In this document: positions 17,361 through 64,000 of the stretch, in pieces | Numbering within the stretch: position 1 is the stretch's first letter | Layout: the number at the start of each line of letters is the position of its first letter | Assembly (NCBI RefSeq): GCF_052425735.1 | Contig: NC_135770.1 | Coordinates: 33,790,001-33,854,000, forward strand | DNA from: Oculina patagonica | Lineage: Eukaryota | Direction: 5' to 3' | Length of the DNA: 64,000 nucleotides | Notes under the pieces: generated by a model | Database searches by the model: none | Seen by the model: only the letters and a program-made list of their open reading frames with translations | Told to the model about the DNA's origin: nothing | Translations under genes and position numbers: made by a program

Positions 17361-19433
17361 TTTATTATCCATTTAAACAATAAAATGTAACAGAAGTACT
17401 AATTATGGTAAGGCGAGGAAACCTCCAGGAAACCACCAAGCTTATAGGGGAGGCCACCTCAGTTATCAATTTGTTAGAAATTTAGTTGTGGAAGTGCGGC
17501 TAGGTCAATTCAGAATCAATTCACTAAAAATTCAATCATTTTTTGTTTCTTAAAAGTAGAAAAGCTAGTCGAGCTAGTGATCGATATTGGGAGAGAATTC
17601 CAAATTTAAGGACCCTGGTTTGCTAGTTGATGCCTGAATGTAGTAGCATTTTGAACGTAATCACGCGATATTCTAACCGACTTGTATTTCAGGTGAACGC
17701 TCATCTTGAGAGGGATTGTGGTCTTACTGAAGTAGACTGTAAATATGCACATGTTGGGTGCCAAGTTAAGGTGAATTTAAAGCGAGTTTTATTCCAAATT
17801 GTAATATTTAAAGTTGCTTAGGAAGAGAACGCAAGGTTTGGAACTTGAAGCAGTGCTACATTAAATCACTGATTGCAATGCAAATAAAAGAAGTGCCTAA
17901 AGCTAATTTATTCTTGATCTAGAGCATATGCTCTCTCCTGCGCAGTGTTCTAATTTTGAGTATATCAGCAAATGCTTTGCTTAGGTAAATCGGGTGCCAA
18001 CAACAACCTCTTCTTTATGTGCAAACATGACAGCATTATACGTCTAAACGTTTGCGCCCTCTTTGGCATTCAAGGGGCCCGCGCTACTTTCAACTTGCCG
18101 GAAGCAATCCATGAACGAATTGACCAAGTGTCCTAAGGCCTTGAAACGTGTACAACACCAAGTTAGAAATTATTGGTAAAAAGGCGAACCTGTATGACAC
18201 GACGTACTACGTAATACTCTTTTGGAAAGAATCTAACTTACCTACGTAATAACTTTTTTTCCCTTTTTTAACACAAAGGTTCCAAGGAACCGCCTCGAGC
18301 GACATTTACAAGTCAACATGGAAGCTCACTTAAACATAGCGTGTGGAAAACTACAAATACTGGAGAATGAATCCTTGATCACAAATCAAAGGCTTGAAGA
18401 ACTGGAAGGTGTTGTGACCACGCACAACAACCTGGACGAACTGCATAATGCGATAAGCGATAAAATTGTGAGACTAGACGAATTGGAGGAATCGATGAAA
18501 AAAACTTGCCAGCTTCATATCAAGACAGATGCAAAGATGGGTCGTATGGAAGCTGTTTTATCTGGCATTCAGAGAGAAGAAGAACGGCGCGATGGAGTGA
18601 TTGAAAATATTCAAAGAATCTCACAAACTTTAGAAGACGAAATTGAAAATATAAAGCGAAAGCTTCAAGAGCTCGAGCAACCCAGCGCAACCGCCACATC
18701 TTACAGAGCCGAATTTCAAGCTGGTCCATCCGGGTACAGAGGGAGCTTAAAATTGCCCTCACTAGTCACGCCAACGGCGCCCCCTCTTCCAAGGCCGACA
18801 GGACTTCCAGAATGTCGGGGACGGTTTTTCGGGGCCAAACAGTTGCCTGAAATGATGGAATATGGTACACAAAGATCGCAAGAACATCTTGGTACCAGCC
18901 TGTCAAATAAGCAATGCCCTCAAGAACTGTCCACTGAAGTGCATATTAGCAACAAATTTATCTGGAAATTTACCCAATTCGATGATTGCCTGCAGAAAGC
19001 AAAGCACGGAACAAAGACTTATTATCTGAGTGATCCATTCCAAAGTGGCCCGTACGGATACAAGATGTGCATCGAATTCCATCCTAATGGGTTAAATGAC
19101 GGATGGAACACCCACCTGTCGATTTTTGTGTGTCTAATGAAAAGTGAATACGATGACATATTGCCCTGGCCTTTTAACAAGAAGGTTATAATTACGCTTA
19201 TTGACCAGCAACCAATTCCATATTTAAGGCGAAATATCCAGATGTCCAGTCTTCCCAAGAACAATGGACACTTGAGTGTTTGTTATTCCAAGCCAGTAGA
19301 AGCCAGACCGCGGAATGTGGCATTCGGGTTTTGCAAGTTTACCACGCAGGAGCGCCTTAAAACTAGACGTTATCTTGTGAACGACACCCTTTTTCTCTGT
19401 GTAGAGGTTGACCGTTCGAATCCTATTTTGTAA
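14024..19433 (+). CDS. TRAF-like gene 2 (RING, 5 zinc fingers, long coiled coil, Pro-rich linker, MATH), about 590 aa, 7 exons
   Basis: Exons 14024-14166, 15822-15870, 15976(or 15973)-16083, 16464-16625, 16965-17042, 17693-17770, 18279-19433; GT-AG and in frame. MATH motifs FIWKF, HPNG, THLSIF, SEYDDILPWPF, YLVNDTLFL. Confidence 0.92.
17327..17360. repeat. (TCA)n microsatellite
   Basis: About 11 units seen directly. Confidence 0.9.
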
Positions 19434-27800: not shown

Positions 27801-28972
27801 TACGGTAGTATAATGCTTCATTTTACCTTCTTAGTCTGGAAAAATGAGATGTTCTTGGGTTTTAAATCACAATTATTTGATTTCATTGGCATTCTTTCTC
27901 TTCATTTCTTTTTGTCGAGTTTTTCCTTGCTAAAACAGTCTTATCTGACAGAGTTTTCACATTGGTCACGTTGTACCTTACTGTTTTATTAGGAAACTAC
28001 TATCGCAAAAATGATAATAGTTTTTATTGTTCTTTACTGTTATCAGATTTATTTATTTATTTTTAATTTAAGGTGCAACGAAAAGCCATTTCAGATCATC
28101 TAAAAAGAAACACAGAATCCCATTTGAAGCTGGCTTGTGAAAGACTTCAAGAGCTTCAAGATTCATCCACTCTCACCACAGCAAGTATTGAAGAAATGCA
28201 AACTGAAATTGTAACGGCCGTGAAAAAGATTAAAGAATTATCGGAAGAAGTTCTAAATAGCGAAGGTCTGCAGGACTCTTTATGTGATAAAATAGCTGCG
28301 ATAAATAAGAAGTTACCAAAATTTCAAAGTAGGGATGACGCAACTGACGGGAGGCTTTCTGCTCTAAAGACTGATGTTGTTACCATGAAGACTGAGGTGG
28401 CAGAACTCACAGAAGAGCTGCCTTCTACCGATGGAACACTTTCTGCCGTTCAAGATGACATAACTGAGTTGCAAAAATTGATCCCTAGAGTTGACAGTTT
28501 GCAAGGTCTACGTGGAGAAGTTGTTGGGGCGGTGAAAATAGAACTTCAAAAACTACTAGAATCAACAGTTACTAAATTGAATGAACGAGATCGCATAATG
28601 CTGGATGAGATCGAATCCCTGCAGACTGATATTGTCACCATAAAGACAGAGGCGAAAGAACTCACACAAGAGCTGTCTTCTACCGATGAAACACTTTTTG
28701 CCGTTCAAGATGACATAAATAAGTTGAAAAAACAAAATCGCATAATGCTGGATAAGATCGAGTTTATCAAATGGTCGTTAAACGCTCAGTTACAGGACCT
28801 TCGTGACAACTCTGCACGGGACAAGATGTTGTTGGACCAATATCGTTCCGAACAGAAAACGTTAAAAGATTTCGTATTTGTGATTTTTGGCGTCGCCATT
28901 TTGGTACTTTGTGTGCGTTACGGAATTTTTACTGACCTGTATTCGCGTATCTTGTCTATCTTAAAGAAGTAA
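21893..28972 (+). CDS. TRAF-derived gene 3: RING, 5 zinc fingers, coiled coil, C-terminal hydrophobic (putative TM) tail, no MATH domain; about 507 aa
   Basis: Exons 21893-22035, 24021-24072, 24158-24265, 25221-25388, 26825-26899, 27496-27573, 28073-28972; GT-AG and in frame (1524 nt). Ends KDFVFVIFGVAILVLCVRYGIFTDLYSRILSILKK*. Confidence 0.9.
22793..23064. mobile_element. TA-flanked MITE rich in TTTCGCG motifs (family with several copies in the window)
   Basis: TACCTTATTGTTACTT ... AAGTAACAATAAGGTA; related copies at 1-365, about 15010-15184 and 57269-57470. Confidence 0.75.
25891..26064. mobile_element. Tc1/pogo-type MITE (TA TSD)
   Basis: TA|CAGTCAACTCTCG ... CGAGAGTTGACTG|TA; decayed relatives near 3676-3850 and 4288-4446. 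Confidence 0.8.
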
Positions 28973-29179
28973 CAGTGATAACTTGGTACCCTTCACTTTC
29001 CAATAGTAATTTTTATTTATTCTAGTCGACCAAAAAGACGATCCGAATCAGTTTGTTGTTATACAAGTCGTTAGGGCAACGACAAATAAATTCAGTTATT
29101 TCGTGAAACTGGAGCCACTTAAGCCACTTTAAGAATGAGACATTTTATCAATATTTTATAGTACACAAAGGGCGAGGAG

Positions 29180-31219: not shown

Positions 31220-34200
31220 ATGTCTGGCTTTGAATACGCGTTTGTAAATGAAGTTCTTCAAGAATACTTATGCCCGATATGTCACTGTCCCATGCGTGAA
31301 CCAGTGCAGACGAAATGTGGACACAGATTCTGCAAACACTGCTTGGAACAGTACATGAAAGAGTACGTAAACCTGTAAGATAAAGACAGCTGGATGTTTT
31401 TACTTCAAGCAACTAGATGTCAGTGAAAATCGCATTTATAGCCGTTCACACCTCTGGCATTTTACTATTTAAGGTTCAGGCGCAATATTTTCGTTGTTCT
31501 GTTATCTCACTCAGACACATGTCGGTAGCTGAAAAATCGGTAGACGAAATTACTCAGGCACTATCGAATGCTCGAATATCAACTTTTATACCATGCCATA
31601 GAAAATACAGCCAATCAGAATACAGGAAAGCCGTTGTATATTCGACGGTATTCAACCCAACCTTCCCATCGTGCGCTGCGATTGTATTCTCGACGAAATT
31701 TAGTAAGCGTATTTTCTATGGCATGGTATAAAATAGTTACACAACACTTTCTCGTGGTATACTATGGAATATCCCACTTGTCACTTGTATTTTCTTGGTA
31801 TACACACTCGCCTAAAGGCTCGTGTGTATACCGAGAAAATACAAGTGACTCGTGGGATATTCCATAGTATACCACTCGAAAGCGTTGCATAACTAGTATA
31901 TATTAAGCTTAATGCATACTCAGTTCATTTTGTTTATATCACAATTGCACTAAAATCACGAAAGAAATTAATCTTGCAAACACGGTAGCTAACAAACTTT
32001 AATGAACTTAGGCGTTTCGTGGTATAGTTTCCGTCAGTTGGTGTAGACGTTATCTAAAAATACTCTCAAGAAATATTCTTGTGCCGATTGCGGTTTATCT
32101 TGCAATGCAAATAATTGTTCTTCTACAATAAGCTACAATACCATCCATTCTTTTTGTTGTATTCTTAATTAGTAAGATGTGAGCGACATATTCCAAACAT
32201 TTAGGTGTATAATTTTTAGGAAAAGTGAATGTCCCATCGATCGTTGCACCCTTGATGAGCCTTCTGCGAAGGTAAGTACGTACCGGTATGTAAATTGACT
32301 TCTCTCTTGCAAAAGTTATAACTTTTCAGGCATAACATGCGCTATGATTTATTCAGGGGCACCCAAGGAGAAAAATATAATAGAGGTGTCGGAACACCGT
32401 TTTGTCGTTATAAGTGCCTTTTTGTGCAATTTTAAGCCTTATTTTTTAAACGCTAAGAAAAATGAATCTTTTCGGATACGCTAGCTGAACTTTTAAACTT
32501 CAGAAAATTATAGGGAAAGAAACATTATAACCCGAATTTACGAGCCGCTGTTGCCTTCTCAAAAATCCCAGCTGGCCTTTTTGGTACCAAAAACGACATT
32601 TTTCTCTCTCCGAAAACAAAAGGCTCCATGTCACGAAAGTCTAAGCTGAAGAAATCTCGAGCTCCCATTTTTCATCACACTTTTATCCGAAAATCGTAGG
32701 CGATTATAGGTCTTCTGAACAGATATTCACCGAAACGGTCGATTGGGTGCCGGCTGTTTATTTTCATCTCCATTTTTATTATTTAGAACAATCACGCTAC
32801 ATTAGTACAACCTAACGTCTTGTGGATAATGATCATTTGATGTGTTTTCATAGAATATATATCCTGATTTAGCAATTCAAAGGACAATTTTGGACTTTGT
32901 CATAAAGTGCCCTAATGAACACAATGGTTGCAAATGGACTGGGGAACTCAGAAGTGTAGAGGTGACTGTTACGCGGTTTACATGTTTTATTTTCGTCTGT
33001 TGGTTTTCACTGGGCATAAGCACAAACACAAGCATAAGTATATAAGAAGCATAAGCATAAGAACACAGTCATTTCTTTTATGTTGTCCTCACTAGGAATA
33101 AACATGTAAGCACAAGAAAACAGAATTGTTTGTTTTTGTAGTTGTTGTTGACGTTTATGTATCCTGTTCCTTTTAGATTAGATGCCATGCATATAAACAA
33201 GTATGTGTGTGTTGCTTTGGCAAAGCTCTGTTTGCTGGGATAATAAAAGACAAGACTACCAGTTGGCAGATTTTGGCCACGGATGTGGCCGTTTATTTTT
33301 TATATCAAGGATAGAAAGCTTAAAATATGGAAACCTTAAAGTATTATCCCAGCAAAGGTGAGGGAGAACCCGCCAACCCAAACCAACAACAACAGAACGC
33401 AGGGAGCAGTGGGAGGGGAAAATTATCTTCACTCGTTGACGCCATGAGCGAAAAGGCGATGTAACCGCGCTTTCGTAACCTAAAAGGCCGCGAAAATGTA
33501 ACCAGAAGTGATAGTTGGAGGGAATTTCACCGGAAGCTGGTAAAGACTTACGAAACAAGCTACATAAAACCATTTATTTTTGCAAAATAAATATCCTTTT
33601 TAATGTGCTTGTGCTAATGTTTGCGCTTGTGCTTTTGTCCGTGCTTATATTATACCCCAGTGAGGAACGGCCTTTCAAGGCTAAGTATTTAAAAGTGACT
33701 TGATTTTTTGCAGTTTACAACAATAATGATGATGATGACGACTTAATTTAAAGGAGCTATGTTTGAATTCATTTTTCTTCTTACTTTCAAATTGAAGAAA
33801 AACTCAAAATTAAAATTTTCTTATGCAGAACAAAACACCAAACTGAGGAATAAAAATCCCAAAATAAACAAGGTTGGTTGCGACTGACGAAGATTAAGAC
33901 GGATTACAAATGAAAAATTTGAAAACATTTGCCAATTTTTTCAAATGTTTTGTCCATGACGTAGCTTCTTTAAGTGTCAGGTTAAAATAACAGTTACACA
34001 CTAAAAAAAGGCACTATTTAAAATAAGATACATTGCAAAAAAAAAAAAAAACCAATCAGTAAACATAAAAACTTAAGATCTATAAATTAATATGCCTCGC
34101 CCTCTTAAATTTCTCAACTTATATTTCTATATCGTTAACTTTTAATTCAATTTGAAATCAATACATTGTTAAATCAAAAGTACAAAATGACGATTTTGTT

Positions 34201-37200
34201 TTTCAGACACATGAGCCTAGCTGCAGTTTTGTGGGTGTGAAATGCACTAACGAGGATTGTGAAGCTACTCCCCTGAGAAAAGATCTGCATAATCACGTGA
34301 CCAATAAATGTCCAAAAAGAAAAGTTGAGTGCTTCCACTGTAAAACATTCTTTAAATGGTACATGAAAGAGGTAAATGATTCTTTGTGATATAAACCAAG
34401 AGAACATTCATATTCTCTTGTATAAACAGAATATATCGATTTTTCTTATGAGGCTAATTGTTATGAAAGATGCTAAGGTTGCAACAGCCCATTAGATTAA
34501 TCAGTGCTGTTTGCCGTTATTTTTATATCTGTTTGTTTGTTTGTTTGTTTGTTTTTACTCATTATTTTTACAGGGACATTTTGACGTGTGTACGAAATAC
34601 CCGATGGCTTGCCTTCAAAGATGTGGTGAACATAAAATTCCAAGAGACAAGGTAGACCTGTAATTTTGTTCAAACATTTTAGTACAATTACCAAAAAAAG
34701 ATTAAGAACAAAAGTGCCGGTTACTGCCAGTATATTGAGTATCAAAAGCTGAAATAGAGTCGAAATACACTTCCGAACCCGTAAAATATAGTTTAAAGAA
34801 CATTTTCAATTTTATCGCGTGAGCAGAATAACCACAGTCAGCAGAAAACTGAGGCGTTAGTCAAAATACTGCAATGAACTGGCTTGGTCATGAAATAAAC
34901 AGCTTAAGTGCACAGTAAAATGCCAGGTGTGATGTCTGACTCAACCCCAATATGAAGGAACCTTATAAAGCACGCCATTTCTGGAAAAACGACTTGGCAA
35001 CTGATTCAAGGCTATGATATACCTGGGAGGTTAACTCTTTAATGTACTCGTTCATTGCGAATTGCGTTAATTACACTGTGGAAAATAACATTCTTGAGGC
35101 TGGTTCTCATAATCGCCCCGATCGTTTCTATCGCCTCGTCACTTCAAATTAAAAGGTTTTCTTGCGATCGGGGCGATTATATGAGAAAATTACACAGACG
35201 ATCGCTAACGTCTGCGGCGATTGGGGCGATCACGATCTTTTGGATCGCCCGTGGTCTATCCTTCTAGCTCTTCTTTCCCTTCTTCGCCGTAAAACTTCAA
35301 TAACTGAGAAGATAGGAGGCCACGAGCTTTGCTCTTTCATTGAAGGCTGCCATTGTGTTGCATCTAGAGCTAAAATGATTGTTTTTCGTAAATCTTCGCT
35401 CATACCACGCGATCGGGACGATCATATGAGAACCCCCGGTCGCTTCCAATCTCTTCGATCACCTAAGACCGTCTCAGAATTTGCAAAACGATCAATGCGA
35501 TAGAAACGATCGGGGCGATCATATGAAAACCAGGCTTTAATGAACAGTTTTGCGTCAAAGTAGAAGAAAACATTAAAATATAAAATAAAAAGGCGAAGTT
35601 TCAAAATTAGATTTTTAGTGAAGATAGGGTATAACAAAAACGTTCTTAAAATCAAGGTTGGCCTGTAAACATGAAAACATGCACGACAAAAATATTGAAA
35701 TTTTACAATTAGTAAATTTAAATTATTTTTTTCAATATACATTTTCTCCGCGCGAGCACCATTTTTTCCTATAATTATATTGGCTAAGAAGGACGTATTT
35801 TCTTACCGTGCACGAAGATAGCACATTATTCGTCAATTCTATGAACTCTAATGACGTGATGGGTAGATACTCGATCAGGGCGGAAGGAGAGAGCTCTGAC
35901 GCCCTGTACTCGAACAAGTGATTCATCGTTTTTGAACTACAGTATAACATTTCTCGTCATTTAATTTCTAGATGAATGAACACATTGAAAACAGTTGCCC
36001 TCATACTAAAGTGGAGTGCACGTTTGTCCATATTGGTTGCAAAGCTAAGGTACGATCTGGGGAGGAGGAGGGAACTCCCGTATGAAACGGACGGGGAAAC
36101 GGTCTACTCGCTCGGGGGTGTAAATTAAGGATATTGGCCTCATTAAGGGTTTTGATGGCCTGCGTTGCAGACGAACTAAACCCCGGTAGACTATATCGAG
36201 GATTCTGTGACACGTCCGGCTGCAACGCAGGCTAAGGTGTTCCCGGGGGAGGGGGGGGGTACTCAGGACTTCAAGTGACGGAGATGATCGAATAAGGGAA
36301 AAAATCAAGACCCAAAAAATCCCTAGGGCTTTCAACATAACCAAAAAGATCCCCACATAAAAAAATTGACCCCTCAAAAATCAACAGCGAAACACGTTTG
36401 TTTGTACTTTATTCGCAAAACTACCCAGCGAATGCACTACTGCCCGTCAAGACTGAACAGGCATGAAAAATGATATCTTTTAGGGGTAAAAAAGAGCTTA
36501 AGCCACATCCAAATTGGGTTTCCTTTAGAGGTTTTAATTCAACTGTTCTGATGAGCATCCCCATCCTTTTGATCTGGAATTCTCCCTGGAGGGTACGAAC
36601 GGTAGAAAGTAAATGTAGTGTACTTACTATTTCTAAGCTATCATTACAAACAGATGCATTAATTTCAGGGAGAAGGATATTAAATTTGCGATTTTTCTGT
36701 TTTTGTGGAGAGAGGTTCTCTTGTGTTTTGTTGATAGTGTTTTGTTCGCTTTACTTTTTTCATCGTAACTTCTGGTTCTTTTCAGGGCTTTGTTTTGTTA
36801 GAAACAGTATAAACCAATCATATTCGTTTCGTATATAGAAAATGGCATGCATTTTTTTCACTTCAGGTGCAACGAAGAGCCATTTCAGACCACGTGAAAA
36901 AATATTCAGAATTCCATTTGAAGCTGGCTTGTGAAAGACTTCAAGAGCTTCAGGTCTCATCTACTCTCACTGCAGCAAGTATTCAAGAAGTGCAAACTGA
37001 AACGGCTACCGCCATGAAAAAGATTAAAGAATTATCAGAAGCCGTTCTAAAAAGTGAAGGTCTGCAAGACTTGAGCGACAGGGTTGCTGAAAGAAAAGAG
37101 AAGTTACAAGAACCGCAAAGTAGGGAGGATGCATCTGACAGGCTCTCCTCGCTACAGGATGACGTTTTCTCTATAAAGAAGGAAGTGAAAGAGCTCTCGA

Positions 37201-37700
37201 GAAACGTGTCCGTCAATGCAAAGCTCTTGGAGCTTCAAGATGAAATAAATAATTTGCAAAAATTAATCCCCAGAGTTAACGTTGTTGCTGGGACCAACAA
37301 AAAACTTCAACAACAGCAAGAAGCGAATGCTAGTTTGAAGAAAGAAAACAGTGCTAATTTGCAAGTTCTACGGAAAGAAGTTGCTGGGACCAACACAAAA
37401 CTGCAGAAACTCAATGAAGAACTCAATGAAGCAATTATTAGAATGGAGGAGCGAAACTTTGATGCAAACAGTTGCAGTTTGGTATTGTCAGAGATAGATT
37501 CTGCCAAATTGGAATTACGACGTCTTCGTGAAGACACTGAAAGGAATAGGAACTTGGACAAATTTCGTATCGATCGCTGGGAAATGTTTAGTGAAATCAT
37601 ACTGACTAGCATTTTTTGCATAGCTGTTTACTTAGTTTGTTTTCGATTTGGAACAGTCGCTGATTTGTATTCGCTTATCATGTCTATCTTCTATAAGTAA
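31220..37700 (+). CDS. TRAF-derived gene 4, paralog of gene 3: RING, 5 zinc fingers, coiled coil, C-terminal hydrophobic tail, no MATH; about 485 aa
   Basis: Exons 31220-31362, 32220-32271, 32854-32961, 34207-34371, 34574-34651, 35972-36049, 36867-37700; GT-AG and in frame (1458 nt). Ends EIILTSIFCIAVYLVCFRFGTVADLYSLIMSIFYK*. Confidence 0.9.
33752..33969. mobile_element. Short TTAA-flanked MITE (Kolobok-like)
   Basis: TTAA|AGGAGCTATGT ... ACGTAGCTTCT|TTAA. Confidence 0.55.
35096..35538. mobile_element. TIR MITE rich in CGATCG motifs (Harbinger-like)
   Basis: GCTGGTTCTCATAATCGCCCCGATCGTTTCTATCGC ... GCGATAGAAACGATCGGGGCGATCATATGAAAACCAG. Confidence 0.7.
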
Positions 37701-37865
37701 CAATGATGGCTTACTACCCTTGCTTTTCCACCGGAAAAATTAACAATATGGAAGCTACAATCTGTCCTAAGAAACTGCCAAACTTAGACAATCCACTTTT
37801 TCCAAGTCCTACTAAATGTTTTGGGTACAATGATTTATCTATCACTCAGATCTTAAACTGGAATG

Positions 37866-38043
37866 CACGGTGGCCTAATGGTTAATGTGCTGGACTCCGG
37901 ATCGAGCGGTCCAGGTTCGAACCTCGCCTTAGGCACTGCGTTGTGTTCTTAGGACACTTTACCCTAATAGTACTTCTCTCCACTTAGGTGTATAAATGGG
38001 TACCGGCAATTTACTGCTGGAGGGTAACCCTGCGATCGACTAC
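37866..38043 (+). mobile_element. tRNA-derived SINE (second family)
   Basis: A box TGGCCTAATGG, B box GGTTCGAACC, body GGTGTATAAATGGGTACCGGC; antisense relative near 9230-9420. Confidence 0.75.
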
Positions 38044-40036
38044 TTTGGTAGTCTCCGGACATTTTCGGAAGTCGACAGAAATTTTCGGCAGTCTTAGGGA
38101 ATCGTCGTAAAATGGCCGAAAACTTCTTGGCGAAGTAAATTTCGCAATTTTTATTTAGTTATGTTTTTGTGTAGGTAATCAAATGGGCCGAGAAAAATTG
38201 AGGATTAATATCACGCGTGTTTTCAGAAATTTTGTCCTCTATGTTATGAGAATTATTACATACTAAATTTCATATTTTACAACACTTGCATTAGCTTACA
38301 ACCTCCAAGCGATCAGTTGACTATTTTCCGGGTCATATCGAAAAACAGGTCCCAGCCCCATGACGCTAGGCTATGACTGCGTCATAGACTAGATATGAGA
38401 GTTTGTATGGGAACTTAACATCATGTATAGCAGTTCTTTTCAAATATTAACTGCAGAAAGCATTGCAAATGTCGCCAAACATTCTATTACTTACAACGGG
38501 GATTGTGAATCTTGCATAAATGAAGGAGAAGGGGCATGCTTACCAGTCCACTCCAGTCTGAAACGGTATACAACTAAACTCTAAAACAGTTTTCACTAGA
38601 AACGTTTGCAAAGGAAAAGCCATGCATGCCCGAGAATACATTAAATGACAATAATTTAAGTGCTAATGAACCTTTAATTTATCTAGCTTACTGAATACAT
38701 TATATGTAAATTAGATCTTTTGTGTGAATATTTATGTTATGTTTTTCTTTTCCTTTTTTTTTTCCTGTAAATATTTGTGTAATGTATTGTAATTTGATGT
38801 AAATAAATGCTGTTAATAAAAAATAAAAAAAATAAAAAAAACTCTTTAGTCGAAGATTGGGTAGCAAATTTTACGTTTTCTTGATCTGAGACGGGGTAGG
38901 GGTTTTGACCCCAGCGGAGTACCCCACCCAATTTTTCTAGGTGCCTCACCTACCGTGGAATACGAGGAGACGTGTCACTGCATCGTGCTCGCACTACATT
39001 GTCTTGTGTGTTAACATATGATTTTGTTTCTACTTATGTCCTCGTCTTACGTCCCGGCTAGTGTGTAAAGAGCCGTGATTTTTGTCGCTACCACACGTGG
39101 CATGACATGCCGAGCAACACGAACCCTCGTGGGTGACCACCTTTTAAATGTAAAGTAAAACGGGCAACATTTCTTGCAACAGTGTTGCTTTGCAAGTTAA
39201 ATAGGTTTGTTACGCCAGGGACCGCGCAGAGGAAGCAAAAAATTGTTAGTTCAGTAATAAGGGACAAAAGTTACTGGCAAAGTAGACGCGCAGATAAGTT
39301 TAGTACAAACACTGTCATAAATTAGTTATAAGTCGCTATAATTATCGAAAAAATTTTCAGTTGTAGCCTTGTGCTAGTACAGGTTTATGTCTTTTAAATG
39401 GCTTCTTTTTGCAAGCGGACCTCTCAGGAAAACGAAAACGTAATTGGTTCAAAAACCGGGCTGGAAAAAATAGGTCAGCAAGGGTGACACCCACCCCCCC
39501 CCCCCGCCCGCTAATGTCGCTCACGCGTCCGTCTTTAGTCCCCCCCCCCCCACTCTAAAACTTGCTGCGCGGGCCCTGTTGCAATACCCGTTGCAATACT
39601 GGTGCTAAAACCTGCAAAGTGTTGGGAAAGTGCAATTTGAATATTAGTTTCATTTACAAACAACAGAAAGGTAATTTCTGTCAACAATTTATTGTACGCA
39701 CATCTTGATGTAAGATTTGCATTGCTGTTATTAAGCTTATTTTTTTATTTATTTTATACTTGCATAATTTGCATAGATACTTGTACATTACTATGGCAAC
39801 TGAATTCGAATCCTATTATATACTTGAGGCCAAGTTTTTATCTTGAAAATAATAAAAGCCTGTACATTATACGCATTGTGATGCCATCTTTGATAAGGAA
39901 TGTTCATTTTGTTGGAAGAAGGAAGAAACAAAATATTGCATTGTTCTTGGTAAAGGAAAAAAAAAAACAAGCGATAGCCCCTTACATCGTTTTGGCTGTC
40001 GTCCTTAGGGTAAAAAACAACTCACGGTCATGTATT

Positions 40037-40874
40037 CTATATGTCATAGTCACCATGGAAAATTCTCGAAAACTTTCTTTCCCTATGTTCCACAAATGCG
40101 ACTTTGATAAATATCGTATCGTCTTTGATGTAGGAGCGTGAGTACAAGTCTTTGTGAAATACGAACTCCCAAACGCCACAAGCTGGCTCCGAGTCTTCGG
40201 ATGGTCTTGCCAATCCCTCGGCGGGTTGGTGTTGAAGTTCTTTTCTTAAATGCCTTCTTTTTTCCACTAACTCATTTTGGTCTAACAAGGTGAAAACCAC
40301 AGAGTCTTGAAAAGGCCATATCAGAAGTCCATCATATTCCCCGATCAGAACCCTGAGATAAATTGACATAAATTCACCCTTCTCGTCAACGTTATCATTG
40401 GTGTAGTAGCCATCGGGATAAAGCTCGACCCCGAATTTGTAGCCATTGTAGGTAGAGTAGAACGGATCGCTAATTATTACTCTGCTCTCGTTTGATTTAG
40501 CAGCCTCCATGGTAGATGAAAAGTTCGATATTTTCCATAAAAAGGGGGAATTCTGTAAGCGTTCTAACTTTCCTTCAAGGCGAGTTATCGTTTGAGCTTG
40601 TTCCTGGATTGTCTTTGACATATTAACCATACTCTTACAAGCCAGTAGTAGATGACTGTCCTTTAATGCATCAAAATGAGCTTGGGAATCACGCCTCTGA
40701 AACTAAGTGAAACGAAATATTACACTTACAATTCCAGTTTGCAACAGAATAGCACGTAAGTACTTAAGCAATAGCCTCCATTTGGCGCGAAAATATTTAA
40801 CAATTATTCCACGAGCGCGCGTTGGATATGAGATGTTTATAGAGGCGCGTAGCGCCGGCTTGGCTATAACGATT

Positions 40875-48929: not shown

Positions 48930-51900
48930 TTAAACCGGTTTGTCCGCTGGACTAACTTCAAACTTAATAAATAAAGTACCATCTACAACATATGAGCCTG
49001 TTCGGAGCTTTTCATGAGAGAAAAACCTTCCAAAACCACGTCTTTCATTTTCATCACTTTCCGGCCGTTGCATACTCTTCCATGAGGGTTCAGGGATAAA
49101 CGACTTAACAAAATTATGCCTTTGCATCAGGTCAGGGTTTTGGTCAATAATAGTTAGTGTCACTTTGTATAGAAAAGGCCAGGGCAATATAGCGTCGTAT
49201 TTACCCCTCATTAGTGCAATATAAAGTGATATATGAGCGTTTCTCGCCTCTTTTGTGCCATTAGGGTACATAGCTAATTTCATCTTATACCCTTGAGGAC
49301 CGACGTAGAATGCATCGCTTTCGACTCGAATCTCTTTGTCCTGTTTGGCTTTGCTGACTCGCTCCCAAAAGTCGGACAATTTCCATATAAACGGCGCGAA
49401 TGTTTCCATTTCTTTATGTTTTAGCTTCATTTGAGTTACATCCTTCTCAAGTCCAGTAAGTTTGGAGTTCACTGTGTGATAATTAGCTTTCATCTGTTCC
49501 AGTTCTCGTCTCAGGATTTTAGTCTCGTCTTGTACTTCACCAAGTTTTTCTACAGACAGCTCAAAATGCAGTCGTAAGCTTTGCTCCAGATGATCGTTCA
49601 CGTCGCATCGTTTAATCTAAAAAGAGATAGAAATCTAGTAAATAAAAAATCCAGAATATATCTAGTAACAACAGTGAACCTTCAAGGGAAAATCAAATTG
49701 GTTTATGCACGAAGTTTGGTTAAAGTTGCAGTGTTCGACCGGGTGAAGCAAATCAAAAGAGAATGGACTCGAGAATTGGGATTACACTGTAGTTCAACTC
49801 GTAACAATCTTTTATATTTGAAAGAGTAAATTTACTGCGCTGTGGAGTCACCTCAAAGCTGACATAAAAAGGAGGGTCTCAATGGGGTGGTGGCTTTTAC
49901 GGTTAACGGTTAATATTTTGGCTTTTTTTACGACTAACGGTTAATTTCTTTCCATAAGGGTTAGCAGAAGAGGTAAAAATTAATTTACATTGTTTTAAAA
50001 AAGTTGAAAATTAGTTTTCATTGTAAAAGGATTAAAAGTTACCATTGCTGTAAAACAAATTTAAAGGTCTTTAGAACATTTTTGGGTGAAAAAGTAGCCT
50101 ATTATATTAAATATTATTTTGCCACTAATTTCCACGAGGCAGTACAGTATCAGGTTAAAATTAATCTTGGCCAAACTTCTTGGCTCGTTCGTTACGGTAA
50201 ACATATTTTACGACTAACGTTTTTTTATAATTACGCCTAGCGGCTAAATTTTTGGCCTTATTACGGCTGACGGTTAAACCCATTTAGACCCTCTAATAGC
50301 TGTACGCGTCTTCACGGAAGCGTTAAGTTTTACTTTAGGTGTCTTTACTTTACAGTGCACTGTGAGTCTTGGTTTCCTTTTAGGCAACTTAACCGTTTCA
50401 CGAAGTTGTGGGAAGTCTTTTCAGGTAAAAAAAATTCAGTGTTGTAGAAAGATTTCTTGGCGATGAAACATATGATAAGGAAAGAACGAACGTTAAAATT
50501 TAACGCCCTAATACAGTATACATAAGTATTTGTTCATGGGTCATATCTATCTTTAAAACTAAACTTTGGAGGCCAACACTTGATGAACAAACTCCCCATG
50601 ATTTTAAACAAAACTCAGAACTTACAATATTTTACCTTAACGTTGCAGCCCAGGTAGTCGTATTTGCAGTTTACAACCGTTTGAGAACAAACGACATCCT
50701 GATGAGCCGTCATCTAAACAAGAAAGTCATCAAAAATAAGACTTTTTTTGAACTTCAAATAATATTCTACAGTTTGACGTTGTTCGTGACGTTTTGGTAT
50801 CAGGAATAAAGCCGTCTGCTAAAATGTTGGCCTTTGATCTTAAACCTGTTGCTAAGTAACAAGCCTTGACGACATAAATGACGACGTGCAAAACCGTGGA
50901 GCGCAAACACCAAAAAGAACGCCGCTTGGGAGTGTTCGCTCTATATTGCTAATGCACAGAAAAGATGAAACATGTTCCGATACTTCGAGGATTAGAAAGT
51001 TAGAATCAAATACTAGACAACTCTTTTACTCCCTATAATATCAAGTGTAGTGACGTCTTCATTAATCACACTGAAAATTATACCTCCTCTTTAGCAAAGA
51101 CCTCGCCACACCCATTGGAACATTCAGTAGGGCGTCTTCGACATTCTGAGGCGTGTTTCTGTTGACAAACAGTATAACGCAATCTTTTTTTGCTCAGAAC
51201 TTAGAAATACAAAGGTGAGATTCACAATAAAAAAGTCGAGTATTTTAACAATAAATTAAAACTAGATATAAAGCCTGGAGCTAGCGTTAATGAACCGTCA
51301 GCTGGTTGAGTTTCCACAACCATCTAACTTTTGATCAGGCGTCTTGAAAAAAAAATGTAGGGAGGGAGGGCAGGATCACAGATCAGCATCCATCCTTCTA
51401 TGCTGATATAACAACGTGTGACAACAAAAAGGCGAGGTGAAGGATATGTGTATTTTGACCTGGAGCGATTTGGTAAAGATTATCTCAAGGGCGATTGTAC
51501 GTCCCTCCTTACTTTTGAACTATACCTAAGGTCTTATAAATTTTCAGGATTGTATAAACATACGGTTTACATTTACCTCTTCGTCGAATTTAGCGTGTTT
51601 CTCGTCACAGTGACCACAGTGCACTGTTCTCCACTGACATGTGTTAATCACGTGGTCGTTCACAAGTCTCCTCTCTAGTGTTATTTGACAGCGAGAATTG
51701 GGACATGAAATTACTTTGTAATCACAGCTCTGTAGATGGGTCTGTGGAAAGGGGACAAAGTCATTTCAAATTCGATGAATTCAAATATATTATTTATAGA
51801 TTTTGTACAACACTTTTTCGATACTTTTTCAATTTTCTCTTTCTTACCCCCCGACTCAATGAAATGTGAAAACATGTTCCAATGCCAGAACAGGAAATTT

Positions 51901-57991: not shown

Positions 57992-60353
57992 ATGGCGGAA
58001 CCGGCGGGAGAACTACCTCCTTTGGCGGCAGAACCACCCGCAATTCCTGAACCGGCAGCAGAACCTGTGGCAGAGCCTGTTCTTGAACCGGTTGCTCAAC
58101 CGGCGGCGCCTAATCAGGTAACATTCAGTTTTTTAGTGCGTTTCTTTCGTCTATGGCTTTGGCTACTCGTTTGTAGGACGCGTTCATATCGTTTCTACAG
58201 CATTTTTTGGGTTGTTTGTTTTCCTAGTTTCGCTAGCACTTTGCTTAGCATGTTTTCATGTTGCACGTGTCCCTGGGGCTTTTGTCGGCGTTTTTTAGTA
58301 TTTTGCTTACTCGGTTCGTTCCAGCTTGTTTCCCAGGCGTTTTGGTTCGTCTCTTTCTTGTTATCTACTCTATAGTTGCCGGTTCTGCTCCGGGACCTCT
58401 TGTTTCGTTTTATAGGGATTTTTTATAGCGTCCTTGGTCTTGTTTTTGTCTTTAACAAATACTTTTGTATAAACGGTCCGGGACCGTTCGGCTCCGGGAG
58501 CCGGTGTTGTTTTTAACGATATATTTATTGTGTTCGGCTCCGGGAGCCGGTGATGTTTTGTACGAAATATTTATTGTGTAATCGGTCCGGGACCGTTCGG
58601 CTCCGGGAGCCGGTGTTGTTTTTTAACGGGATGTTTATTGTGTAAACGGTCCGGGGCCGTTCGGCTCCGGGAGCCGGTGTTTGTTTTAACGAAGCAGTCA
58701 CTTGTAACGGTCCGGGACCGTTGTTTGGCTCCAGGAGCCGGTGATGTTTTGAACGAAATATTTATTGTGTAAACGGTCCGGGACCGTTCGGCTCCGGGAA
58801 CCGGTGTTGTTTTAACGAGATATTTATTTGTGTAAACGGTCCGGGACCGTTCGGCTCCGGGAGCCGGTGTTTGTTTTGAACGAAATAGTCACTTGTAAAC
58901 GGTCCGGGACCGTTGTTTGGCTCCGGGAGCCGGTGATGTTTTGAACGAAATATTTATTGTGTAAACGGTCCGGGACCGTTCGGCTCCGGGAACCGGTGTT
59001 GTTTTAACGAGATATTTATTTGTGTAAACGGTCCGGGACCGTTCGGCTCCGGGAGCCGGTGTTTGTTTTGAACGAAATAGTCACTTGTAAACGGTCCGGG
59101 ACCGTTGTTTGGCTCCGGGAGCCGGTGATGTTTTGAACGAAATATTTATTGTGTAAACGGTCCGGGACCGTTCGGCTCCGGGAGCCGCTGTTGTTTTAAC
59201 GAGATATTTTATTTTGTGTAAACGGTCTGGGACCGTTCGGCTCCGGGAGCCGGTGTTTGTTTTGAACGAAATAGTCACTTGTAAACGGTCCGGGACCGTT
59301 GTTTGGCTCCGGGAGCCGGTGATATTTGAACGAAATATTTATTGTGTAAACGGTCCGGGACCGTTTCGGCTCCGGAAGCCGGTGTCGTTTTTAACGAGTT
59401 ATTTATTGTGTAAACGGTCCGGGACCGTTAGGCTCCGGAAGCCGGTGTCGTTTTTGAACAAGATATTTATTGTGTAAACGGTCCGGGACCGTTGTTTGGC
59501 TCTGGCAGCCGGGGTTGTTTATTGTGAGTCAGTTTTGTTTTTAAACAAATAATTATTTGTGTATACGGTTCGGGTCCGTTTCGGCTCTGGGAGCCCGGCG
59601 GTTTTTGGTTTCAGGGTACGTACGGGATATTGGGCATACAATCCGGAAACTTTCTGGCTCCGGGAGCCGGATTTCCTGCTTTGGAGCGAAGTTTCTTTGG
59701 GATACGGTCTGGTACTTATTCGGTAGATAGTCTTGTCTGGTACGAACATATTTTATCGTGTTTTCTTTTGCGATCGGTCAGTACTGGGGCTAAAGAGGAG
59801 ATAAAGAGTTTCAATGTAATGCTTCCCTTTTTCCGTCAACCCCTAGGCGGACGATCGTATTAAGTTGCTTGAGGACAAGTTGAAGGCTCTGGAGGACAGG
59901 CAAGGCCTTGACGTAGTTACCACCGCTCTTGCGTCAGTCCGTAACGCTCTTCTAAAACCAGAATCAATTTACGATCCTTGGGAGGCGTCATCTCTCGTTG
60001 AGGCCCTAGTACGAGCGGCCAGGTCGTCCGCCCACGAGAAGGCAGACCACTACGCAGCCATATTGGATGAATTGAAGGGGAGATCCAGTGTCCTCTCACC
60101 CTCCGCTCATAGGAAGCTACTTTTGGGGCTTTTAGGCGACCCGGTTAGGGCCAAGGTAGCGAAAGAGTCTTCGGCGCTTTTAAAGTCAATCCAACGAGAA
60201 GAGCCTGGGTTCCAGAGTCGTAACAGCACCCGCCACTTCAGGCGCCAACGCCCTTACATCTATAGTCCAGGGAACTGCTATAGATGTGGCCAACCCGGGC
60301 ATTTTGCCAGGGAGTGTGGCCGCGGACGAGGACGCGGAAACTCAAGGCGTTAG
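57992..60353 (+). CDS. gag: DIRS gag-like ORF1, predicted spliced join(57992-58117, 59847-60353), about 210 aa
   Basis: Leader MAEPAGELPP...APNQ ends at CAG|GTAAC (phase 0); acceptor CCCTAG|GCG at 59847 continues ADDRIKLLEDKLKALEDRQ... to zinc knuckle CYRCGQPGHFAREC and an RGRGRG tail. Confidence 0.75.
58468..59600. repeat. Tandem array of about 17-18 units of about 62-66 bp, with a roughly 192-bp three-unit higher-order period
   Basis: Unit core GTAAACGGTCCGGGACCGTT-CGGCTCCGGGAGCCG-GTG; the variant GTCACTTGTAA recurs near 58697, 58889, 59080 and 59274. Confidence 0.95.
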
Positions 60354-60703
60354 CGACTATTGTCAGGGCGTGGAGTACGATTTTTGTACCTTTCCTGTGC
60401 TTCTGTTTTCTATGTCATATTTATTTATGGTTTAGCTCGTTTTTTCCTTGCGTAAGGAGTCAAACTTTTGCCTTTATCGATCACTTGTATTTTCTTTTTG
60501 GTTAATAAAGAATGTTCTCTAGTTTATTTGCGTTTCAATCCTTTGGTTTTTTACCTCATTTCTTCGTTGACCCTGGGGGGCCTTCTCAGTGCCTTTATTC
60601 TGGTCTATGATCAGAGCTGGGGTCAACGAAGGATAAGGGGTTTCCCCTGTTTTTTGTTTTCGAGTTTCTTATTTTTGTTTTTCGTTCGACGTGTTTTTTC
60701 CAG

Positions 60704-62875
60704 GACTTCGCGGTTGCCCTGCAGGAAGTCCTTTCCCGCCCGAAGCCTGGCATCGTATGGTGTGATATAAACGGGGAACCCTTATCCTTCGTTGGCCCCA
60801 CTGTATCAGCAGAGCTTGTCAGCAAAGACCCATCCCTTGGAAACTTGGCGCACTTACGTTTCAGACATCCAGATTATTTTCAGGCTGGCAGTTTGCATGA
60901 TCATGTTGATTTCTGGGAACACCTCATCTCTTCAACTGGTTACGTTTGTCCTCAAGTTAATTTGTTGCAGATAATCCGAGAGGGAGTGAGGGTTCATGAT
61001 TTCTTCCGTCATTTCAAGGGGAATTTTAAAGGTAGACATTATGACTCTGCTGTCCCGCCAATTTCCAGTTTTCCGAACTCTTCTTGTTGCCATCAGCATA
61101 CCGATTTCATTGATACAACAGTTTTGGCTTGGGTGTCTCAGGGTGTCATCAAAGTCTACGGCAAGGTTGGCGTATGCTCTCCCCCGCATTTAGTCCTTCC
61201 TTTGACAGTCGAACCATCAAAACCACGTCTTTGCCACGACGAACGTTTTCTAAATTTATGGGTTCGGGATCTTCCATTCAAATTAGATCACCTCCCGGAT
61301 CTGCCTCGTTATGTCTTCCCAGGGCATTTCCAGACAACTTTTGATGATAAGAATGGATACCAGCACCTTAAGATTCACCCGGACTCCCAGGAATTTTTCA
61401 GTTTTTCCTGGAGGGGCTATTATTTTTCTTTCTGTACCTTGCCGTTCGGATGGAAAGCAAGTGCCTTTTTATACCATAACACAGGCCTTGTCGTCACTAG
61501 TGCCGCTCGATCTTTGGGCGTTCCCCTATCGCAGTACATTGATGACAGACATGTCGGCCAGTTGTTCCTTTCCGGCCTAGTGGATTGCCAGCCTAGTCGC
61601 CAACTGCCCAAGCAGCAGCCTTTATCCTGTTGTTCCTTCTCATTTCAGCAGGATATTTTGTTAACCTTGCTAAGAGTTCCCCAGAACCGTCCACTTTTGT
61701 TAGATTCCTGGGTTTTATCTCCGATTCTATAGTGCAAGCCTTTTTTATCCCGCCCGATAAAAAGGAGAAATTCAGAGCGTTGCGCGAAGAACTCTTGGGA
61801 TCCTCTTGTGCGCCCGTAAAGAGCTTGCAACGCTTCGCAGGGAAAGCACTATCCTTTAGTCTTGCAATTCCGGCTTGCAAGCTGTATGTACGAGAAGTGT
61901 TCAAAGCAATTGCCGTCGTTGCCAAGAATTCTAAGATTTCTGTCCCGATTCAGGGACCTTTGCGACAGGAACTCCAAGAATGGACTTTTCTGGATAACTG
62001 GTCGGGACACTTGCCTTGGCGATCGGAGCATCATCTCTCTGTCACAATGTTCAGCGACGCCTCTCAGAGGGCCTGGGGGGCAGTATTAGTAAAAGATGGT
62101 CTGAGTCAGCAAATACGAGATTACTGGACCGACCTTGAAGACGATATCAATGTCCTTGAAGCTAGGGCTTTATGCAACGCTTTAAGCTCCCTTTTCCCTT
62201 CTATCAAAACACAAGGATCGACGTATGGACGGATAACATGACGCTCCGAGCGGCTTGGGAAAATGGCGGTTGTAAAAGTTCCCTGGTCAACCAGGAGATA
62301 AAAAGATAGAAGAAATGTCTCGAGCTGGAAATTTTGCTCTACATTTGAAGTATATCCCATCGAGTGAAAACATTGCTGACGCGCCCTCCCGTTCTCTGTC
62401 TGATATTGATTGTTCTCTGTCTGAGAAGGCGTGGGCCCGAGTTCAAGCGATGTTTGGGCCACACACGTTTGATTTGATGTCTTTAGACAGTAATTGTCGC
62501 AGAGAGAGGGATGGAAGTTTGTTGCCTCATTACTCGCCTTGGCCAACCCCGTTTTCTTCAGGAGTTAACGTTTTCGCTCAACCGGTACCAGTGGAACATA
62601 ATGTATATGTTTTTCCTCCTTTCGTCCTCGTGGGACCGTTGTTGCGATACCTTTTTGATCAACATCAGCGTTTCGCTTTTACCATTATTGTCCCTCGTCT
62701 ACACCCGCATCGTTATTGGTGGGCTTTACTCCAGGCCATAGCAGTGGATTCCTTTCTTCTTGGAAGGAAAGGTGATCCGGCTATATTGCTTTTCCCTTCT
62801 CGCTCCTCCCCAGAATTCATTGCTAGGCCCTTACCATGGGATCTGTGGGTTTTTCGTTGCATCTGCTCCTGGTAA
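60704..62875 (+). CDS. pol: DIRS pol (RT, RNase H, adenine-methyltransferase-like domain), broken by three -1 frameshifts in this assembly
   Basis: KPRLCHD, FDDKNGYQH, LPFGW and YIDD (61535-61546); RNase H FSDAS, INVLEA, VWTDN, NIADAPSR; MT-like FDLMSLDSN and VYVFPPF. Frameshifts near 61605, 62206-62209 and 62300-62304. Confidence 0.85.
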
Positions 62876-62902
62876 GCTGTGTATTTGTGCTTGTCTATAT
62901 AG

Positions 62903-64000
62903 ATCGAACGCTTATGGAAACCTGCTTTCAGATGTCCCGCCTGCTGTTACCCGAACGACAGTGATGCTAATTTTTGCCAAGCCTGTGGTAATCCCACGTC
63001 GCGTGAACCAACACAAGGAGCCCGTCCTAATGTGGACATGCCTCTGATTAACAAGCGTTTCGCAGAATTCCGACAGTCGTTTAGAAACAGACCTTATGAA
63101 CGACAGAAGGATTCTTTGGAAATTCAGCTATCAAGTTTCTTACGCTCTTTGGTACCTCCAAAGAAGGTCTCTGCTGCGTCCGCTGAAGATATCGTAAAGT
63201 TTTTGGTTAGCAAGGATACTGCGGGAAAACAGAAAATCCATGTACGCTCATGCTCCAGGAAGACCTGTGATTGCCCTAAGCGTCTGGCCGCTGGAACTGT
63301 CGATTCATATATAGGGAAGCTTAGAGCGATTTTCAATAAGTTAGGCCGTACAGGGTTTTCTAACCCGCTGGCACATCCTTGTGTAAAAGAATATCTCAAG
63401 TTTGTAAGGGAGGAGCAAGCCCAGCAACCTTTGCAACCTCGCCAAGCTGTTCCTTTGTTCTATGACAAATTCACCCGCTTGATTACCTATCTCCGTGGGC
63501 TTATTGTTGAAGGTTCTGGGCTTTCTCCTCTCAATAAATACCTTTTGGTCAGAGATGTAACTTTCTTTGTCGTTGACTTTTACACGGGCGATAGAGCATC
63601 CGATCTGGGGCGTTTAAAGGCAGATCAGCTTTTCCGCCTTAAGGACAGGGAGGGGTTTCTTCTTAACTTTACATTCAGCAAAACGAGGCGCGCGGGTCAA
63701 CTACGCCCTTTTGCTTTGTTACGTATTCCAAATGTACCCGCCTGCCCGGTTTTTTGGCTTAACTATTATATCGCAGCTTGTGGGTCGTTGGGTGTCCCTC
63801 TTCTCGGTGAGTATTTCTTTAGATCTTCGGAACATAAGAAATTTTTATCACATCGCCCGTTTGGAGGGTCAGCTGTATCTGCACGACTTCACAAGTATCT
63901 TAAGGCCGCGGGCATCGATGACGGTGAGACCCCTCACAGCTTCCGGGTAGGGATTTCTTACACCCTCAAAGGCTTGGGTTGTACTCCAGAGCAGATTGCC
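62903..64000 (+). CDS. DIRS tyrosine recombinase (3'-partial, open to the window end; absent from the ORF track)
   Basis: 366 open codons IERLWKPAFRCPACCYPNDSDANFCQACG...; catalytic motifs TGDRASDL (R), FSKT (K), TPHSFRVG (HxxR). Confidence 0.9.
   Translation, partial: MERLWKPAFRCPACCYPNDSDANFCQACGNPTSREPTQGARPNVDMPLINKRFAEFRQSFRNRPYERQKDSLEIQLSSFLRSLVPPKKVSAASAEDIVKFLVSKDTAGKQKIHVRSCSRKTCDCPKRLAAGTVDSYIGKLRAIFNKLGRTGFSNPLAHPCVKEYLKFVREEQAQQPLQPRQAVPLFYDKFTRLITYLRGLIVEGSGLSPLNKYLLVRDVTFFVVDFYTGDRASDLGRLKADQLFRLKDREGFLLNFTFSKTRRAGQLRPFALLRIPNVPACPVFWLNYYIAACGSLGVPLLGEYFFRSSEHKKFLSHRPFGGSAVSARLHKYLKAAGIDDGETPHSFRVGISYTLKGLGCTPEQIA

Follow-up and report, generated by a model that had tools for sequence, protein, structure and literature searches.

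Two MATH-less TRAF genes of the coral Oculina patagonica end in a tail composed, by alignment, of an old transmembrane helix and frameshifted MATH codons

Why do two TRAF genes of one cluster share a C-terminal membrane tail, and is that tail kept by selection? The question arises in a 64,000-nt stretch of the genome of the stony coral Oculina patagonica (the window, whose coordinates are used for all positions below), where ordinary coiled-coil/MATH genes are accompanied by two plus-strand genes, gene 3 and gene 4, in which Pfam finds no MATH domain on the last exon (28073-28972 in gene 3, 36867-37700 in gene 4). The gene 4 product ends in ...VCFRFGTVADLYSLIMSIFYK-stop (stop codon 37698-37700) and the gene 3 product in ...LCVRYGIFTDLYSRILSILKK-stop (stop codon 28970-28972). 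The first-pass annotation of this DNA had described a hydrophobic run followed by a common C-terminal motif in both tails, which is present exactly as quoted, and had taken the pattern to be maintained by selection. Our analysis leads to a different answer: gene 4, like gene 3, is probably a functional MATH-less TRAF (RING E3 domain, zinc fingers, and coiled coil) held on a membrane by an inherited C-terminal helix, and the shared motif would be a frameshift peptide. The exon at 36867-37700 is the last of seven gene 4 exons, not a whole open reading frame (ORF), and an AG acceptor precedes 36867. Both genes were modeled with seven exons, all with GT-AG introns, encoding 507 amino acids (aa) in gene 3 and 485 aa in gene 4; no residue differs between the gene 3 model and the public protein P0034, named 'TRAF6-like [Oculina patagonica]'. 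Two named NCBI O. patagonica proteins match window exons at 100%.

The source of the tail was found in a group of coral TRAFs (P0005/P0018, P0008, P0012, and P0014) in which a single exon encodes a coiled coil, then a hydrophobic helix of 20 residues and, after a linker, an intact MATH domain. These genes, called TM-MATH genes here for their transmembrane (TM) helix, are complete TRAFs with RING and zinc-finger exons. By hhalign the tail genes are homologous to the TM-MATH genes up to the TM start (probability 96.9%), and the helix DNA of several tail paralogues gave its best diagonals in frame at the orthologous TM start. The TM segment of gene 4 itself gave no significant DNA diagonal, and its assignment rests on the alignment with the tail paralogues. 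The part after the helix was located in MATH DNA. When the last 13-15 codons of six tails were compared with three reference MATH genes, the best place was 2 nt before the Thr codon of THLSVF, at offset 1, and one out-of-frame diagonal won or tied in 18 of the 18 tail-versus-reference comparisons. Read in the +1 frame, the reference genes give IRYKTLIYLYLFIF-stop (P0005), IRYRRLI-stop-LYLFIF-stop (P0008), and IRHRTRI-stop-LYLCIF-stop (P0014); the corresponding tails are IRYGTIVDLYFLFFSIF-stop in P0004 (shuffle P 0.004), VRYGIFTDLYSRILSILKK-stop in gene 3, FRFGTVADLYSLIMSIFYK-stop in gene 4, and IRYRAYFDPLLDII... (IRYRAYFD...) in Orbicella. Between the helix end and the MATH match point the three references have 244-265 nt (280 nt with the left edge moved five codons upstream), and whichever left edge is used, the missing length equals 1 mod 3 in each of them. 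The deleted length and the shared +1 diagonal together argue that the tail is the old TM helix joined to out-of-frame MATH codons, closed by a stop that pre-existed in that frame. In gene 4 (plus strand), the alignments (hhalign and paralogue alignment) place the helix FSEIILTSIFCIAVYLVC at 37587..37640 (Kyte-Doolittle 19-residue mean 2.22); the last 19 codons at 37641..37697 align with MATH codons (...PNG-NPVQNTHLSVFVY...) read in the +1 frame, and the TAA stop at 37698..37700 occupies DNA where intact MATH genes encode Ser-Asn (AGT AAC). The last exon of gene 3 (plus strand) is divided in the same way, into a TM-derived part at 28871-28912 and a frameshift-derived part at 28913-28969. In our reading of the alignment, a 9-nt tandem duplication would have added 'x-S-I' to the tail, and in genes 3 and 4 a further 1-nt loss would have removed the old stop and added two residues.

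The rest of the MATH domain lies as an untranslated relic directly 3' of both stop codons (tblastn E 2e-8 for gene 3 and 6e-5 for gene 4). In gene 4 the relic (37701..37861, plus strand) falls in the 3' untranslated region (UTR) and is spread over two frames: it reads SNNDGLLPLLFHRKN, then NMEATICPKKLPN...CFGYNDLSITQIL, with CFGYNDL in the second part, and it ends where a repeat-like stretch begins; it matched P0014 and P0018 (tblastn E 1e-4 to 6e-5) and is 72-84% identical to MATH DNA by blastn. In gene 3 the relic (28973..29051, plus strand; tblastn and blastn) reads RSNSDNLVPFTFQ..FLFILVDQKDDPNQ, to be compared with SNDNLLPWPFQHQVVFTLVDQQDDPTQ in P0008, contains in-frame stops, and matched P0014 DNA at blastn E 1e-16. 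Relic matches by blastn ranged from E 1e-5 to 1e-23 (best, P0033) and extended into the coding tail. The direction of change is not in doubt, because the MATH frame of the tail genes is broken by stops and frameshifts. As a separate observation, a tRNA-like stretch resembling a short interspersed nuclear element (37862-38000) starts exactly at the end of the gene 4 relic; ARAGORN called no tRNA in it.

Other sources of the tail were tried and set aside. The first-pass annotation had suggested that a profile search would find a donor, and none was found outside the family: the tail profile, run against 1.84 billion representative proteins, returned only 8 proteins, all from the coral TRAF-like family, and a word-indexed search with the gene 3 tail matched only gene 3 and its orthologue. 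With matches confined to the tail family itself, an outside donor was rejected. Reading the DNA right after the P0005 TM helix in the other frames gave no match, the true match being further on, in MATH. A tblastn hint of in-frame homology between tail and MATH (P0033) was rejected as well, since a 4-nt insertion after the P0033 stop restores the frame by accident. Derivation of the TM segment from the MATH strand 'YGYKMCISIC' was rejected in favor of TM-to-TM homology. Splicing was considered as the source of the junction; the left edge is donor-like, but there is no AG at the right edge.

The history that we propose is as follows. An ancestral coral TRAF would already have carried a TM helix between its coiled coil and its MATH domain. 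A deletion of ∼244-280 nt (1 mod 3) would have taken out the post-TM linker and the first half of MATH, and the TM helix would thereafter have run on into MATH beta-strand DNA read in the +1 frame, with an out-of-frame stop after 14-19 codons. The C-x-R-Y-G...D-L-Y...S-I motif would then be a frameshift peptide inherited by descent and drifting at a ratio of nonsynonymous to synonymous substitution (dN/dS) of ∼1, with selection acting on the N-terminal domains and less strongly on how hydrophobic the helix is. The helix would hold the protein on a membrane, with the catalytic and oligomerizing part facing the cytosol.

The selection analysis bears directly on the claim that the tail pattern is maintained. 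Between gene 3 and gene 4, the RING and zinc fingers gave a dN/dS of 0.23 (P 1e-8; dS ∼0.5) and the coiled coil 0.42-0.51, where 0.42 is the value for the start of the last exon. The tail gave pairwise values of 0.76-0.87, and codon-model maximum likelihood on nine tails gave an omega of 1.15 for the tail as a whole; for its 30 membrane codons the value was 1.01, with 1.12 in the helix and 1.04 in the frameshift part. An omega of 1 was never rejected for the tail, and an omega of 0.42 was rejected (twice the log-likelihood difference, 23 and 13). The first-pass annotation had itself named a dN/dS near 1 as a refutation, and its proposal of maintenance by selection was not borne out. Nucleotide divergence between the two genes amounts to 0.43 for the tail, against 0.42 for the untranslated relic and 0.49 for the end of the coiled coil, and nucleotide identity is 67% in the tail and 68% in the untranslated DNA after the stops. 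Since the tail has diverged as much as the relic, the pattern shared by genes 3 and 4 is what descent alone leaves; judged from these alignments, the likeness of the two tails is homology and no stronger than in the neighboring untranslated DNA.

The strongest form of the earlier proposal holds that the whole tail is kept by purifying selection for a specific job, with a palmitoylated Cys beside the helix and a terminal amphipathic helix. The motif does recur, being present in both genes and in relatives from other assemblies, the Cys is found in most members, none of the nine sequenced tails has a premature stop, and the last 15 residues of gene 3 have a hydrophobic moment of 0.58. Yet the frameshift part evolves at an omega of 1.04 with 0.42 rejected, at the nucleotide divergence of the untranslated relic, and its out-of-frame MATH origin accounts for the motif. 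The Cys is replaced by Val in P0004, and P0011, P0006, and P0015 lack the motif and still end in a hydrophobic helix. Amphipathicity, predicted for the last 15 residues in the first-pass annotation, was found in gene 3 but not throughout the family: the residues after the Gly are amphipathic in gene 3 (mean hydrophobicity 0.13) and intermediate in gene 4, and the C-termini of P0004, P0009, and P0016 are not amphipathic but plainly hydrophobic (mean ∼0.78, moment 0.2-0.4). We regard such a dedicated function of the whole tail as quite improbable.

Certain features of the tail are compatible with a looser constraint. Neutral simulations were run on the same tree with the same amount of change, and repeated on a conservative set without the two most divergent tails. 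Retention of hydropathy had a P of 0.0045 in the helix (0.05 on the conservative set) and of 0.06-0.09 in the frameshift part, and the absence of premature stops in the eight descendants a P of 0.019 (0.10 on the conservative set). A first neutral simulation (P < 1/2000) was discarded: it included seven A-rich juxtamembrane codons and overstated the result, and the 30-codon versions given here replace it. Selection on the tail is weak at best; only TM hydrophobicity and the open frame hint at constraint.

If the tail drifts, the genes themselves could be functionless truncated TRAFs or dominant-negative decoys heading for loss, with the tail an irrelevant by-product. The origin by deletion and frameshift and the tail omega of ∼1 would fit such decay, and so would one public contig, L006:478-1245 (P0002, SRR27962760), which is 94% identical to gene 4 and carries +1 and +4 insertions in the helix, at window positions 37611 and 37643, that destroy the tail and cause read-through in the old MATH frame. 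The tail frame is intact in five other runs, and the frameshifted contig may represent an allele, another species, or an assembly error. The absence of the tail from the NCBI model of gene 4, discussed below, also speaks for decay. Against it stand the omega of 0.23 on RING and zinc fingers at a dS of ∼0.5, the TM hydropathy retained beyond neutral expectation, the transcription and splicing of the gene, and the persistence of tail genes in several genera, often in two copies or more. Moreover, every coiled-coil indel has a length divisible by three, both in the comparison of the two genes (+9, +24) and among public alleles (-12, +6, +24), in keeping with the earlier remark that both ORFs stay open despite them. 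Taken together, these results make functionless truncation unlikely. A side observation is that the gene 4 coiled coil varies by in-frame indels at 37405-37520 between public samples (-12, +6 or +9, +24 nt).

How old is this kind of TRAF? A search with the gene 4 exon returned 16 relatives, eight of which share the tail type (P0001, P0004, P0007, P0009, P0010, P0011, P0013, and P0016). They are spread over four or more other coral assemblies or runs, and Orbicella faveolata XP_020612137.1 falls in the P0010 cluster. Two others, P0006 and P0015, have the hydrophobic-helix end without the motif. In the Oculina genome the tail was found only in genes 3 and 4. The tail subfamily predates the gene 3/gene 4 duplication. 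We concluded that MATH-less, membrane-ended TRAFs are a real, expressed and old subfamily. The earlier phrase 'a functional subfamily rather than a truncation accident' is supported in its first half, given the expression, the age, and the N-terminal dN/dS of 0.23, but not in its second, as the tail did originate by internal deletion and frameshift of a TM-MATH TRAF.

Whether the deletion occurred once or repeatedly was examined with the coiled-coil sequence. In the coiled-coil tree the Orbicella-type tails group with the TM-MATH genes P0012 and P0014 at 100/99, and monophyly of the tail genes on that sequence was rejected (approximately unbiased (AU) test, p 0.0145), so that a single deletion requires later gene conversion between tandem paralogues. 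Taken at face value, the tree would mean two or more origins of the tail, through parallel deletions in separate coral lineages. That course is the less probable one in our judgment: both tail types share the junction (L-C then I/V-R-Y), the frame, and a derived Asp in place of the Tyr or stop that intact genes show in the +1 frame, and conversion-prone tandem paralogues would yield the same tree. One deletion, followed by putative gene conversion or unequal exchange, is clearly favored. In assembly ERZ25067872 one TM-MATH gene follows two tail genes in tandem. The TM-MATH loci in other corals are at L010:13724-19086 (P0005), L025:881-2266 (P0008), and L027:10001-11242 (P0014). The TM-MATH exons in L010 were placed by tblastn, and Pfam on prokaryote-style ORF calls in L010 gave no match; a word search for TM-MATH relatives returned the query alone. 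The TM-MATH layout would put RING and MATH on opposite sides of a membrane, and no source names such proteins.

Expression was assessed from assembled contigs. An 851-nt contig of run X1 joins 34649>35970 and 36047>36865 at GT..AG and then runs unspliced to 37579 (exons 5-6-7), and contigs of three runs cover 37580-37746 without gaps. We concluded that gene 4 is transcribed and spliced as modeled, at least in a close relative, in agreement with the expectation of expression in the first-pass annotation. The public gene 4 model P0003 ('TRAF4-like', 405 aa) differs: it omits 60 nt of the last exon (37275-37334) and replaces the tail with a 7-residue exon at 38181, so that it ends ...SLVIKWAEKN. 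If P0003 were correct, the gene 4 product would have no membrane tail, owing to a 60-nt exonic intron and a splice from ∼37487 to the short exon near 38181. P0003 is a named NCBI model, its last peptide is encoded at 38181, and GT and AG dinucleotides are present at the proposed sites. The X1 contig, however, is unspliced through 37275-37334 and through 37487 to 37579, none of the P0003 joints was found in contigs of four runs, and contigs of three runs span 37580-37746. The skipped 60 nt coincide with the region of in-frame indels, which could mislead a protein-guided model, and the public gene 3 model retains its tail. A tail-less product is very unlikely, and the public gene 4 model probably has a wrong 3' end through an annotation error.

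The domain make-up of gene 4 was followed exon by exon (all on the plus strand). Exon 1 (31220..31362) carries the start codon and most of the RING (ATG, GT donor, 100% tblastn match to P0003, Pfam RING); P0003 places its donor 12 nt downstream, at 31374. Exon 2 (32220..32271) encodes the RING end with the CPID motif (AG/GT sites, 80% nucleotide identity to gene 3 exon 2), and exon 3 (32854..32961) the linker and the first zinc-finger part (100% to P0003 residues 70-105, AG/GT sites). Exons 4 (34207..34371; Pfam zf-TRAF on P0003, E 2e-21), 5 (34574..34651; joint 34649>35970, GT..AG, in the spliced X1 contig), and 6 (35972..36049; both joints, 34649>35970 and 36047>36865, in the one X1 contig) encode TRAF-type zinc fingers. 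Exon 7 (36867..37700), with which the X1 contig is colinear over 36865-37579, encodes the coiled coil, the membrane helix, the C-terminal motif and the stop. Several Pfam RING models matched residues 18-60 of P0034 and P0003, some of them at gathering scores; the P0003 N-terminus is 100% identical to gene 4 window exons. TRAF-type zinc fingers (PF02176) were found in two stretches in each protein, at E 2e-19 in P0034 and 2e-21 in P0003. No B-box family was among the Pfam matches of P0034 and P0003, TRAF zinc fingers being found there instead, and Pfam detected no translated MATH/TRAF-C on the last exons of genes 3 and 4, where only the relic is present. The gene 4 coiled coil is homologous in sequence to that of MATH-bearing coral TRAFs and forms a long helix in the AlphaFold2 (AF2) model.

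The gene 4 N-terminus leads straight into the RING, and the sole strongly hydrophobic window is C-terminal; inspection of the 485-aa product showed no signal peptide and no second TM segment. The best 19-residue window covers residues 241-259 of the 277-residue exon product, with 18 residues after it, and tail-anchored proteins are marked by one hydrophobic helix that lies no more than ∼30-40 residues from the C-terminus. All tail members have a 19-residue window with a Kyte-Doolittle mean of at least 2.0. The AF2 monomer of the last 99 residues is one continuous helix through TM and tail, with no hairpin (mean predicted local distance difference test (pLDDT) score, 78); the input was a nine-sequence alignment, and we graded the resulting support as weak. 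The gene 4 product thus has the layout of a tail-anchored protein, predicted to insert into a membrane, whose identity is likewise a matter of prediction, and to face the cytosol, and its domain make-up suggests ligase or adaptor activity.

The anatomy of the two genes, the origin of the tail, the pattern of constraint, and transcription with splicing were all shown here. Several points nevertheless weigh against our reading of a functional, membrane-held TRAF with a frameshift peptide at its end. Membrane insertion, location, and ligase activity are predicted from sequence. The RNA evidence consists of assembled Logan contigs from a relative that is 3-5% diverged, not of O. patagonica reads, and the named public model of gene 4 is without the tail. 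Significance is only modest in the tests of hydrophobicity and open frame and changes with the sequences included. The position of the left deletion edge is fixed only to within about five codons, no TM-MATH gene was found in the Oculina genome with the queries used (which is not proof of absence), and both the grouping of Orbicella-type tails with P0012 and P0014 and the rejected monophyly go against a single deletion unless gene conversion followed.

The surroundings of the two genes were also surveyed. Introns of gene 3 (1985, 85, 955, 1436, 596, and 499 nt) and gene 4 (857, 582, 1245, 202, 1320, and 817 nt) have common sequence only at the exon flanks and differ in length; the first-pass annotation had ascribed different transposon content to them. 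High-copy repeats at 35092-35587 and 36084-36579, in gene 4 introns 5 and 6, are covered by contigs hundreds-fold deep at 90-95% identity in each of the four runs and are not present in the gene 3 introns. The ordinary coiled-coil/MATH genes of the window end at 10971-11549 and 18237-19433 on the plus strand and at 40037-40702 and 48930-49616 on the minus strand. In a genome search a MATH-bearing query gave 65 MATH matches, of which some thirty lie in the 0.5 Mb surrounding the window (C13, ∼33.57-34.10 Mb); further groups are on C1, C11, and C13 at 22-25 Mb. Several Oculina MATH matches have in-frame stops, and the TRAF cluster is very large and includes pseudogenes. An ORF at 60845-61732, inside the retrotransposon that the first-pass annotation placed at 57992-64000, has a weak reverse-transcriptase match (RVT_1, E 1e-4).

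TRAFs are central adaptors of TNF-receptor and Toll/IL-1 signaling, known as soluble proteins that are recruited to receptors via MATH, and corals have a greatly expanded TRAF family. A MATH-less TRAF permanently tied to a membrane would wire the TRAF pathway differently. Tentatively, robust-clade stony corals may carry lineage-specific, membrane-integral TRAF ubiquitin ligases, of which the TM-MATH form would have come first and the tail-anchored forms would be derived by deletion and frameshift, acting as receptor-independent platforms on an organelle membrane. If true, this would be an innate-immune wiring not described in any animal, and in the TM-MATH proteins the membrane would separate the MATH domain from the RING. 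The history can be read base by base, from the inherited TM helix through the deletion and the out-of-frame MATH strand to the decay of MATH in the 3' UTR, and it offers a clean natural example of a change of domain architecture by frameshift. It also carries a caution: a 'motif' shared by paralogues can be pure inheritance.

Full-text searches of the literature found no description of membrane or tail-anchored TRAFs in cnidarians, and comparison was made with known systems of related design. With canonical TRAFs of the TRAF6/TRAF4 type (the NCBI labels of the two genes), genes 3 and 4 share an N-terminal RING that closes with CP-x-D, zinc fingers of the TRAF type, and a last exon that opens with the coiled coil, and they lie in a tandem cluster of MATH-bearing TRAFs; they differ in having no translated MATH, only the untranslated relic, and a hydrophobic helix at the C-terminus. 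The coral TM-MATH TRAFs (P0005/P0018, P0008, P0012, and P0014) are closest by coiled coil and have the same juxtamembrane motif and helix position, but they keep the linker and an intact MATH, whereas the tail genes lack ∼244-280 nt and continue in the +1 frame. TRAF7 also combines RING and zinc fingers without MATH; it has WD40 repeats instead and is not membrane-anchored, and the likeness implies no C-terminal homology. TRIM13 and TRIM59 are RING/coiled-coil E3 ligases with a C-terminal TM anchor, reported to modulate NF-kB/TRAF6 signaling. They resemble genes 3 and 4 in having RING and coiled coil tethered by a C-terminal helix, by analogy only: the TRIMs have B-boxes and no TRAF zinc fingers, and the sequences are unrelated. 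MAVS and TRAF3IP3, a TRAF3-binding membrane protein, recruit soluble TRAFs through the MATH domain, and there too a C-terminal anchor attaches a TRAF-dependent signaling scaffold to the membrane of an organelle; in genes 3 and 4, by contrast, the TRAF itself would be anchored, without MATH. In frameshifted paralogues, finally, a duplicate gains a new C-terminus from old coding DNA read in another frame, and the old frame decays downstream. Unlike the usual case, the new peptide here, hydrophobic in its own right, comes after a TM helix that was already present: it would derive from T-rich beta-strand codons and simply lengthen the anchor.

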